A stretch of 63,784 bases of DNA, counting the filler, from Salisapilia sapeloensis CBS 127946 (lineage: Eukaryota; Protista; Oomycota): the NCBI GenBank assembly GCA_023334545.1. It is 4 parts of 4 records of this genome, joined end to end, with 100 filler letters (N's around TTAATTAATTAA, not from the genome) between each part and the next. Parts side by side here need not be neighbours in the genome. Positions count along the whole stretch, not along the records: positions 60,206 to 63,784 come from JAADVB010000738.1; 3 more parts are not named here. One strand, written 5' to 3'. Positions 60,206 to 63,784 of the stretch are shown here, piece by piece. Made by a program: the position numbers and the translations under genes. The notes under the pieces are model-generated. The model saw nothing but the letters and a program-made list of their open reading frames with translations. It was not told where the DNA came from and searched no databases. Every line of letters begins with the position of its first letter. Position 1 is the first letter of the stretch.

Positions 60206-60354
60206 GCGACGTAAGCATAGGACGAACCGCCAAAGACTCAGGCATTGATTCCTATTATAGTGTTTGTGTATTTTTGATCACGCGTACTGTTTTTTGCTTA
60301 ATACCTAACTCTCTGCTCAACGAGCACGGTCGAAGTACCTATATAGCTCATTTA
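60206..60354 (+). repeat. Left arm of a 149-bp inverted repeat
   Basis: Reverse complement of 63636-63784 with one mismatch. Confidence 0.97.
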
Positions 60355-60631
60355 ATAAGGCATAAGTGCTTGCGCCGACTGACACTCCTTGCGACGGGTT
60401 TCGTGCTATCTGTAGACAGTGCCTTGTTCAATTGTGCATCACACCATGGTCTTTGATGATGCTTATCGTTTCGGTTGAAAAGTATGCAATTGGTAGCTTG
60501 AAAGTAGAAAAGATGTCGTGTTCGTGTGTTGTCATGCAATGTCTTTCCAGCAGTTGGTTTTTTGAAACTCTTTCTGCTCGGTAAACTATCATCGCTTTCC
60601 TCGAGATATGTGGTATTCAAGCATTCCAGGC

Positions 60632-62642
60632 TTAGTCTAGCTCGGTCGTCTTGTTCATACCCCTACATTCCAGTGCAAAATTTAGTCAACGCCGCTTTTT
60701 AAAACACGTTTCTGATCACTTACGAAGAATTGGACTCTGAGCCATCAGCTTCATCCTTCGTCGAGCCGTCGCCAGAGTTTCTACAGGTCAATGTGGATGA
60801 ACACCAATCTCACATAAACAGGAATGCTCGTATCCAATTACGAAGAATCGGACTCTGGGCCACCAGCTTCGTCTATCGTCGAGTCGTCGTTGCAACTCCT
60901 ATAACCCAATCCGAACTTTGATTAGCTGTGCATTAGTATGTGCACTTGTGGTCACCTACGAAATGTCAAGCTGTAGGCCGCCATCTTCATCATCGAGCGG
61001 ATTGCCCATGAAATACCTACAATTCAATACAAACTTTAATCAGTTTTATATGATAAAGAAACTCATGCCCACTTACGCTTTTATGTTGCTAGAATCCATG
61101 TAGCTTTGCACCAGTAAAGATTCATTTCGATCACGGGTTGCAAATGGTAAGGGAAGGAATCCTATACGACCCAGATTGTTGTACTGAAGGTGCCTATATC
61201 ATGCAAGTGTTCATGAATCGTTTGATGTGTACTACAACTCTTTTATCCGTGAATTAAATCATGAGTTCATACACTTTCTTGATATGCGGTATATTCGCGG
61301 TGACATTGGATAGACTGTTGTTCTTCACGAACCTGCACAAGATTAAATCTACATTAGAAAAAGAGGCGAAGGGCATGATCAAGAGGAACGTACACATGCT
61401 CCAGATTAGGCCACGAGCCATTCCATTTCTTCATTTTCGTTTCCTCCACGAGCCTAATATTCATTCAGCAAAACACTTTTCCAAAATACATATAAGAGCA
61501 TCATGACATACAGTATCTTCGCCGAACCAAGCGTAACATCGTGCGGCTCACCAAGGAATGTAATGTTGTTCCCATTCAAGTCGCTGATCAGTTCGTTTAG
61601 TCGTATGATTCTTAGGAGAGGCATCGTGATACATACATTTTTCGAGATACTCGCACTTGTTTCCACGCAGACTATCCGACGTAGACTTCTTTCTTGACAG
61701 TATCCTGCATTAAATAGTTAAGACCTTAATATATCTACTTCGCTTAGTGTATGTGCCATACAAATTCTTCAGCTTATTCCCCGAGCAGTTAAAATCCGTA
61801 AGAACATTGTAATCGAGGTATCTAGTTCACACACGAGTGGTTAGCTACTAGAAAGAGAAAATTAGCATCTTAATACTTCCTCCGTAGTGAGATTGGGCAT
61901 CGTCGCCGTAAAGTTGGGCATACTGTTATTGCATATTTTCCTACAAAACAAAAATTAATAAATGTGCGCCCTGAATTGACCATACTCGCAGACTTACAAG
62001 TCACTGAGGTGCACCCAGTTGCCAGTGATATTGTCCAATATGCCATTGGTGTTCCATCTAGGTAAAATGTATTAATAGGCTGATATTTCAACTACTAAGC
62101 TACAGTGTCTAAACGATAACTTACAGTTTATGAAGATTGGGGAATCTTTTATTATCAAGGCTCCTGATCAAGGAGTTGCTCAGATATCTGTTCACATCAA
62201 CTTTAGTAAGCGTATTATCTGCTAGTGTCCACGACCGCATCATACGCACAATTTCTTTAGGCCTGGAAACGTTCCTGATAGACTTTTGATCGGATTGCCA
62301 AGCAGTCAACTGTGTATACATCATGAGTCGAGGTCCATTTATTAATACGCATTTCAAGGTGCTTTACAGAGTCTCGACGTATTGAAATTGAGCCGAGTCG
62401 ATCTTCGTGATCTTATTTCCGTGCAACATACTACAGTTCGTAAAGCGTTAGACATATCTTTTCATAATACTCAAACCAATTTAAGTACATTGCTTTTTAA
62501 AAAAGATCATATTTGTGAGCCCTTCATCATCAATGTTCTTGTTCCGATAGTCTCCAACAGTAGTAGTCTCCTGAGCATATATGCCCGTCAATGCCTAGAG
62601 TAAGAGGGTAACGTGTATGATTTCTTGATCGATGCACTTCAT
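60632..62642 (-). pseudogene. Micro-exon LRR gene (secreted or receptor ectodomain) with lesions
   Basis: Phase-2 exons with AG acceptors: 62368-62430, 62250-62309, 62125-62187, 61998-62057, 61881-61940, 61762-61821, 61512-61583, 61394-61453, 61273-61332, 61077-61193, 60960-61016, 60842-60898, 60724-60780. Putative signal exon from ATG 62642. Lesions: TAG 62595-62597, TGA 62306-62308, GG donor at 61880. Confidence 0.8.
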
Positions 62643-63635
62643 CGTAGTTGGAAGGAGGGAGTGGTCGCTGGTGAGAAAATTGAGACGTAAGAGATGAAAA
62701 GTGGGGTACGAAATCAATCGACCCAGAGCGAGGCATCAAGGGGAATCTTTTTGAAGGTACCATGCATTAATATTTTAGCAGTGTTCGAATGGAGTCGAGT
62801 TAAAGAGATTACCTCTCGGGTCATATGCGGTCGTGAACCTATTCGATCGCAGATCATGCGGGTTCACATATCGACAGATCAAAATGGACACATGGATGGA
62901 ATTATAAATGCAAGTTTAGACATTTACGACAGCTATTACGCGCGAGTTCATGTCCATTCCATAGCTTCATATCCTCAATGGCGTGCGTTGGGACATCATA
63001 ATTCGAAAGCTATAAAGACAGGATGTATACGACAGCAATTTCTCTGGCTTTATTTGTTGGGGGCAATGCAGGGTCATGATCAGCTCATGAGCCTTCATCG
63101 ACAATCGCGCAAGTTTAAAAATAGCTGAAGAAAGAGGAACTACTAATGAAGTGAGCATAGAAACTGCACGAGTAAGTGAAAACACTTCCTTGAAGCGATA
63201 AGTTCCCAAAGGTAAACACGAATTCTTATGGAAACCCCTGTAGAAGCTTGAAAGATCAGAGTATCATCCATTAAAATTAGATCCACTTAAAAATATCACT
63301 CATGTAATAACATACCATCCAATCTTGACACCAGCTTTTAATGGTTAGCGTCTTTGATTCGAAGATGCTTTGAGGCTGCATATACATTTGAAGAATTTCG
63401 AAATTAAACTGCGCTCATCCTTTGTACGTGTCTTCTATTAGATTGATGCCTGTCCTTCCAAAAGTACCTATTACTGTTATCCCGAGTCACGTACCAAACG
63501 ATCCCTCAACGTTGACTTGACACGAAAGTAAGAAGATGCTGAGTGTCAGCTGTAGTAAGTGCTTTATTCCTTTGACTCGTCCAACATGCTGGCGATATAT
63601 GCAGTCAAACCGGCATGCATGCTAGTATGATTGAA

Positions 63636-63784
63636 TAAATGAACTATATAGGTACTTCGACCGTGCTCGTTGAGCAGAGAGTTAGGTATTAAGCAAAAAA
63701 CAGTACGCGTGATCAAAAATACACAAACACTATAATAGGAATCAATGCCTGAGTCTTTGGCGGTTCGTCCTATGCTTACGTCGC
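63636..63784 (-). repeat. Right arm of the 149-bp inverted repeat
   Basis: Reverse complement of 60206-60354. Confidence 0.97.

Follow-up and report, generated by a model that had tools for sequence, protein, structure and literature searches.

A transcribed and spliced ladder of leucine-rich repeat exons with an interrupted reading frame in the oomycete Salisapilia sapeloensis

When a leucine-rich repeat (LRR) gene is divided so that each repeat occupies its own small exon, and all exons share one phase, does it serve as a modular receptor, or can such a ladder be a relic? This question is raised by a locus of the oomycete Salisapilia sapeloensis CBS 127946. An initial annotation, made from the DNA alone, had read there a series of symmetrical exons that could be skipped, duplicated or swapped without frameshift, and had proposed a candidate recognition-diversification system. 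The locus lies in a window of 63,784 nucleotides (nt), the whole stretch of DNA that was analysed, along which all positions are counted; it corresponds to the piece 60206-63784, and its gene is read on the minus strand. Our main finding is that the ladder is transcribed and spliced at canonical junctions, and that the LRR frame of the resulting RNA is broken at no fewer than three points. We conclude, with a probability of about 0.62, that this is a degenerate one-repeat-per-exon LRR-ladder gene, still transcribed and accurately spliced, and that it represents a translationally disabled, decaying copy.

The exon ladder in DNA and RNA

One DNA run (2022) and four RNA runs (2019) of the same organism, produced in separate studies, contain the locus; about 46% of its words are found in the RNA runs, a share that fits spliced RNA. 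Contigs of the DNA run (X1) and of three RNA runs (X2, X3 and X5), taken from the Logan assemblies, were placed on the whole piece. Among the RNA contigs, 15 joints were listed, which skip 53 to 79 nt and read CT..AC on the plus strand, that is, GT..AG on the minus strand. Every joint was recovered from two or all three of these RNA runs, and the DNA run contains none of them; all 15 introns are canonical GT..AG once the ambiguity of the cut is resolved, so that the junctions, predicted from DNA, are confirmed by RNA. Transcription covers the minus strand from approximately 63012 to approximately 60273. RNA contigs of lower depth cross intron 11 (61164-61301), intron 9 (61424-61540), intron 8 (61554-61645) and intron 14 (60751-60871) unspliced; they are pre-mRNA or intron retention beside the spliced form.

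Sixteen exons, all on the minus strand, make up the transcript. The first one seen, E1 (at least 200 nt, from 63012 or beyond to 62813), is known from an RNA contig, the end of which sets its 5' limit at 63012; the true 5' end may be slightly further upstream. It holds no long open reading frame (ORF), and E2 (62746-62489, 258 nt), defined by RNA joints, has short ORFs in three frames. The repeats start with E3 (62430-62368, 63 nt), which encodes the LRR unit MLHGNKITKIDSAQFQYVET, and continue with the LRR units of E4 (62309-62250, 60 nt), E5 (62187-62125, 63 nt; YLSNSLIRSLDNKRFPNLHK) and E6 (62057-61998, 60 nt; WNTNGILDNITGNWVHLSD). E7 (61940-61762) is 179 nt long in RNA and is composed of an LRR unit, E7a (61940-61881), a 59-nt intron-like segment (61880-61822) and a second LRR unit, E7b (61821-61762). 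It is followed by E8 (61704-61637, 68 nt), which is only weakly LRR-like and is included in the RNA in all three runs. E9 (61583-61512, 72 nt), with the LRR unit DLNGNNITFLGEPHDVTLGSAKI, opens the one long frame that is clean; E10 (61453-61394, 60 nt) and E11 (61332-61273, 60 nt; FVKNNSLSNVTANIPHIKK) carry one LRR unit each, and the LRR unit of E12 (61193-61077, 117 nt) bears an insertion of about 19 residues. The last LRR-like unit (YFMGNPL...) is that of E13 (61016-60960, 57 nt). Two acidic, Ser/Asp-rich exons of the same length, E14 (60898-60842) and its duplicate E15 (60780-60724), lead to the terminal exon E16 (60662 to approximately 60273, about 390 nt), which contributes the last 9 codons, a TAA stop at 60634-60632 and a 3' untranslated region of about 360 nt that extends into an inverted-repeat arm at the left end of the piece.

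Much of the initial annotation withstands this comparison. All 11 peptides that it listed lie on the minus strand where it had placed them, open between AG and GT-like flanks, and the lengths it gave to their exons (63, 60, 63, 60, 60, 60, 72, 60, 60, 117 and 57 nt) are correct. Its suspicion that a 178-nt gap might hide one more exon was well founded, as the 68-nt E8 is expressed from within this gap, with an intron of 57 nt before it and one of 53 nt after it. The rule that it had proposed, a ladder of exons of 1 nt + n codons + 2 nt between AG and GT, agrees with the 15 introns confirmed by RNA, but not with E8, whose 68 nt are off-length. The last exon that it listed, of 57 nt, exists as E13, and two further 57-nt exons of the same phase and a terminal exon lie beyond it. 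Finally, exons of 57 to 72 nt are small without being micro-exons in the usual sense.

The ladder is highly regular. Over most of its length exons start every 117 to 130 nt, giving a genomic period of about 120 nt, and in the local LRR frame each ladder exon is laid out as 1 nt, codons and 2 nt, with all ladder introns in phase 2. Each of these introns splits the codon of the fourth LRR core position between its second and third bases (L-x-x-L | x-L-x-x-N). At 10 of the 11 LRR junctions the split codon specifies L (six), V (two), I (one) or A (one), while S is found at three tail junctions. The initial claim of one phase throughout is correct for the ladder introns, all of which sit at the same repeat position, but E8 shifts the frame.

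Several searches bear on whether the exons encode LRRs. The 11 to 12 units, of 19 to 24 residues, align as x-L-x-x-N-x-I/L-x-x-L/F-x-x-x-x-P-x-L-x-x-(L). A strict exon pattern (AG, 1 nt, 18 to 24 open codons starting with x[LIVMF]xxNx[LIVM], 2 nt, GT) matches the minus strand five times and the plus strand not at all, compared with a mean of 0.06 in shuffled sequence. We also made a 20-position profile from the exon peptides alone and searched it against 1.84 billion representative proteins: 30 proteins were found at E<=1e-3, the best at 9e-13, and all eight of the matches that were checked pass the Pfam cut-offs of LRR_8, LRR_4 and LRR_1, so that the assignment of these exons to the LRR pattern stands. 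Several of the matches have units of 20 to 22 residues (NxLTxFxGxFPxLxxL) that resemble those of the ladder; beyond the generic repeat, none of the 30 shows any likeness to the pieces of the product. Single exons, which are too short, gave no Pfam match, and a profile search of the PDB returned internalin B matches only, weakly (E 0.4). Taken together, the searches support the view that the exons encode LRR units, mostly one per exon. A codon-degenerate pattern for E9 had no match when metagenomes were scanned. In addition, the 3' end of intron 4 (62188-62220), in frame with E5, translates as ...LADNTLTKVDVNR, which MAFFT aligns as the first half of an LRR; this may be due to chance, or an exon boundary may have shifted and left it as a relic.

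The LRR frame of the mature RNA

The mature RNA was assembled from the RNA joints and then translated. Its LRR frame is 0 for E3 to E7a, 2 for E7b and E8, and 1 for E9 to E16, and the lesions that interrupt it can be followed in order. Stops in the same frame lie directly upstream of MLHGNK in E3, and no usable start codon precedes the LRR repeats in the mature RNA. E4 begins with T|TGA, so that its first full codon is an in-frame stop (62308-62306), at the first, variable position of its unit; the 60-nt exon LLGNPIK... of the initial annotation is indeed an LRR unit, but this stop had been omitted from its peptide. Further on, the 59-nt segment within E7 resembles an intron in its length, its GC content, its CTAAC-like motif and its terminal AG, but the expected donor reads GG and not GT, and the segment is left in the RNA in all three runs, where it adds stops and a frame change. 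The fifth and sixth exons that had been drawn at this place are both LRR units, but they are not separated in RNA, and in all three runs the RNA retains the intron once assumed between KICNN... and YLDYN.... A second frame change is introduced by E8, the length of which does not equal 1 + 3n + 2.

Because of the stops, the retained intron and the shift in E8, the present RNA cannot encode an 11-repeat LRR protein; it would give no LRR protein, or at most a C-terminal fragment of 139 amino acids (aa). Since the RNA contigs differ from the DNA at no position, the lesions are present in independent DNA (2022) and RNA (2019) data. The lesions expected of a pseudogene are all found within a frame defined by homology: a stop codon that comes too early, a shift of the frame and the loss of a splice site. 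A variant genetic code, in which TGA would be a sense codon, was considered as an explanation and set aside, as the two frame shifts would remain.

What the ancestral protein may have been is suggested by two features. The frame-consistent pieces of E4 to E16 contain 12 N-x-S/T sites, compared with 6.0 +/- 2.1 in shuffled versions, an excess suggestive of an ancestral protein that was routed through the secretory pathway. Moreover, one frame of E2 reads MKCIDQEIIHVTLLL, a TAG stop, and then ALTGIYAQETTT... (ALTGIYAQE...); it does not join the LRR frame of E3, and it could be a decayed signal peptide, interrupted by the TAG. Because these sites are twice as numerous as expected and E2 may hold a relic of a signal peptide, the ancestor was probably a secreted or surface LRR protein. 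The frames part at an A/T homopolymer run just before the donor of E2.

The distribution of the lesions raises the possibility that part of the gene still works. The longest ORF of the mature RNA that begins with ATG encodes 139 aa (MKKWNG...ELD, E10 to E16), its first ATG lying in E10, and the clean 3' frame could be translated from there or over as many as 181 codons. The product would consist of about four LRRs and the acidic Ser/Asp tail, E1 to E8 being reduced to a long spliced 5' leader, the relic of a longer gene. Consistent with this, E9 to E16 are uninterrupted over eight exons, all their splice sites are used, and every lesion lies upstream of them. However, at least 19 ATGs and many short ORFs precede MKKWNG, the protein would lack a signal peptide or other N-terminal feature, about four uncapped LRRs would be an unusual product, and no homologue of that architecture was found. 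We therefore consider a working gene for a short protein to be unlikely.

Several observations nevertheless weigh against a decaying gene. The stretch from E9 to E16 (181 codons) is free of lesions, with every splice site working, which is somewhat unexpected if decay is free. The RNA contigs are of ordinary depth in three runs, though a transcript of this kind would be expected to be a target of nonsense-mediated decay. No intact relative was found, and decay from an intact ancestor would have to be read from the repeat pattern by itself. Finally, Logan contigs drop rare variants and the 15 joints are those listed, so that minor isoforms, for example one that omits E8, are possible. As for precedent, about half of the one-LRR-per-exon ROCO loci of Ectocarpus are disrupted by frame shifts, stops or deletions (PMC3341825), and the decay of such genes is therefore common.

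Exon duplication, exon skipping and the inverted-repeat arms

How did the ladder arise, and is it still being rearranged? Three gapless tandem units of 118 nt (60663-61016) are made up of E13, E14 and E15 with a 61-nt intron apiece; in these units the exons are conserved (75 to 85% between E14 and E15) and the introns have diverged; the exons of the acidic tail seem to derive from the last LRR-like exon. These three units indicate that the architecture arose by duplication of exon and intron together, and the exon duplication envisaged in the initial scheme has therefore taken place. By extension, the whole gene would have grown by tandem duplication of a unit of about 120 nt, of which the last three copies still bear the mark. 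The LRR exons are old: pairs of them are at most 60% identical at the nucleotide level, compared with 45 +/- 6% and a maximum of 65% for shuffled exons, and the introns are unrelated to one another.

Past duplication is one of the arguments for a functional modular LRR receptor, the same-phase exons of which would be skipped, duplicated or swapped, minor isoforms bypassing the apparent lesions. Twelve of the 14 internal ladder exons (E3 to E6, E9 to E15, and E7 if its halves are counted) are in phase 2 at both ends and have a length divisible by three; such exons are alternatively spliced in the ROCO genes of brown algae (PMC11378527); and, in addition to the 15 joints shown, there is one further joint beyond those listed. 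Yet all 15 listed joints, in three RNA runs, connect neighbouring exons, and the exon skipping that had been predicted was not seen among them. Nor would skipping easily restore the frame, for the TGA of E4 sits 1 nt inside the exon with no alternative acceptor nearby, and dropping E7, E8 or both gives no single frame through E7a and E7b. The low identity of the LRR exons to one another also argues against ongoing exchange, as does the DNA run, in which the interior of the locus has a depth of 36.8, that of a single copy, and is matched by none of the other contigs at an identity of 90% or above. There is thus no sign at the locus of recent shuffling or combinatorial splicing. The LRR frame is interrupted by a stop codon, by an intron that stays in the RNA and by an exon that shifts it, and it has no start codon before it; the proposal of a working recognition-diversification system is not supported for this locus, and we regard a functional modular receptor as very improbable.

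The gene lies between two inverted-repeat arms, to which no strand was assigned: the left arm (60206-60373), into which E16 extends, and the right arm (63617-63784), which is not transcribed, nor are the approximately 600 nt inside it. The arms are 100% identical across their outer 141 nt and then diverge abruptly. In an independent Logan assembly the arm is a separate unitig with a depth of 72, versus 37 for the interior, and six or more further contigs of the DNA run carry its outer 40 to 66 nt at 90 to 95% identity, for the most part at their own ends. The arm was found only in runs of this organism; when metagenomes were scanned with a 20-mer from the core of the inverted repeat, 13 soil contigs (54 to 58% GC) were retrieved, which matched over 24 to 28 nt only and were discarded as unrelated.

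These arms may fit transposon termini around a gene fragment, a small repeat that was inserted twice, or an inverted duplication of local origin. According to the first of these, the 3.6-kb unit would be part of a gene that a non-autonomous DNA transposon had taken up between its terminal inverted repeats, in the manner of Pack-MULEs, which would account for the missing start, the lesions and the continued transcription. The identity of the arms, their doubled depth and the recurrence of their outer ends all speak for such a capture, and the piece has no ORF with a Pfam match, so that no transposase is present. However, the piece ends at the arms, which places the target-site duplications and the true termini outside the view; the start of the transcript is not in the right arm but about 600 nt further in; two independent insertions of a small repeat or a local inverted duplication would give the same picture; and the core of the inverted repeat has no relatives in the metagenome collection. 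Capture by a transposon therefore seems doubtful to us. It concerns the origin of the locus, and as such it is compatible with a degenerate gene.

No second gene was detected in the piece: a Pfam search of eight ORFs gave a single sub-threshold chance match, and the Rfam, tRNA and tandem-repeat scans of the piece returned nothing meaningful. Its longest ORF (144 aa, 62694-63128, plus strand) runs antisense to E1 and E2, lacks a Pfam match and corresponds to no called gene on record; it is probably due to chance. As for the distribution of the organism, a salt-marsh metagenome run (X6) contains about 6% of the sampled 31-mers of 60640-62640, so that salt marsh is a habitat of the organism or of a very close relative.

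Relation to other one-repeat-per-exon genes

A design in which each LRR occupies one exon of constant phase is already known from brown algae, Tetrahymena and gonadotropin receptors. Brown algae, like oomycetes, are stramenopiles. In their ROCO genes each LRR corresponds to one 72-nt exon, all in one phase, and these exons are shuffled among paralogues and alternatively spliced (PMC3341825, PMC11378527). The present locus resembles the type I LRR exons of the LRR-ROCO genes of Ectocarpus and Saccharina in having one small exon per LRR, in a single shared phase, in exons that stem from duplication of exon plus intron and, for a large share of the algal loci, in the state of a pseudogene with stops and frame shifts. 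The differences are nevertheless substantial. Exons here measure 57 to 72 nt, most often 60 (20 aa), whereas the algal ones are fixed at 72 nt (24 aa, GxxPxxLxxxxxLxxLxLxxNxLx), and the intron here falls inside the repeat core (LxxL|xLxxNxL), while the algal exon ends just after NxLx. Because of this difference in intron position, the ladder probably arose independently. Moreover, unlike in the algal genes, there is no ROC-COR GTPase, the gene ending with an acidic Ser/Asp tail and a TAA; introns are short (53 to 79 nt); and neither near-identical shuffled exons nor skipping was seen at the locus.

Tetrahymena is a ciliate with a different genetic code and a GC content of about 22%. Its genome contains tens of thousands of LRR exons of exactly 90 bp, over 96% of which have phase-2 introns on both sides, in the same layout of 1 nt, codons and 2 nt (PMC6564038). 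That layout is shared with the present locus, and the Tetrahymena exons originated by clonal expansion of an exon-plus-intron unit. However, the locus has no 90-nt exon: it is a single locus with 60-nt exons and diverged units, as opposed to repeats of 90 bp (30 aa) spread over thousands of genes.

In vertebrates, the LRR exons of gonadotropin receptors are all in phase 2, as cited in PMC11378527, and the ectodomains of the LH, FSH and TSH receptors have, according to the same citation, approximately one LRR per exon of similar size, with all introns in phase 2. The LRR domain of these hormone receptors is extracellular and glycosylated, which we take as a further likeness to the locus. In contrast, they are animal proteins, intact and conserved, fused to a seven-transmembrane receptor and encoded by genes with large introns.

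In its present state, the locus is like the transcribed unprocessed pseudogenes of fast-evolving receptor families, which have kept their introns and promoter and are still spliced, although a codon has become nonsense, a splice donor has been lost and the frame has shifted; unlike for those, no intact parent or paralogue was identified here. It is set apart from the known ladders by the size of its units (mostly 60 nt, 20 aa), by the intron inside the core, by the absence of a ROC-COR or other domain, and by its broken frame. No description of LRR exon ladders in oomycetes came up in a full-text search of the literature. The locus could therefore be imagined as a dead member of an undescribed family of LRR ladders with 60-nt exons and phase-2 introns, independent of the algal ROCO genes, the units of which were perhaps moved by the bracketing inverted-repeat element; we hold this to be rather unlikely. 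If it were true, LRR exons and genes would be shuffled with the assistance of a transposon, in a lineage for which this has no earlier report.

By itself, the locus is an LRR-ladder gene of modest interest, and a well-documented case in which transcription and accurate splicing have outlived the reading frame of a gene. It also calls for caution, as a neat exon ladder read from DNA alone can conceal a stop, a dead splice site and an exon of the wrong length. If intact relatives exist in this genome, they would constitute a fourth independent array of one-repeat, same-phase LRR exons, after those of brown algae, Tetrahymena and vertebrate hormone receptors, and the first such case in an oomycete-like organism, which would bear on how recognition surfaces may expand by exon duplication.

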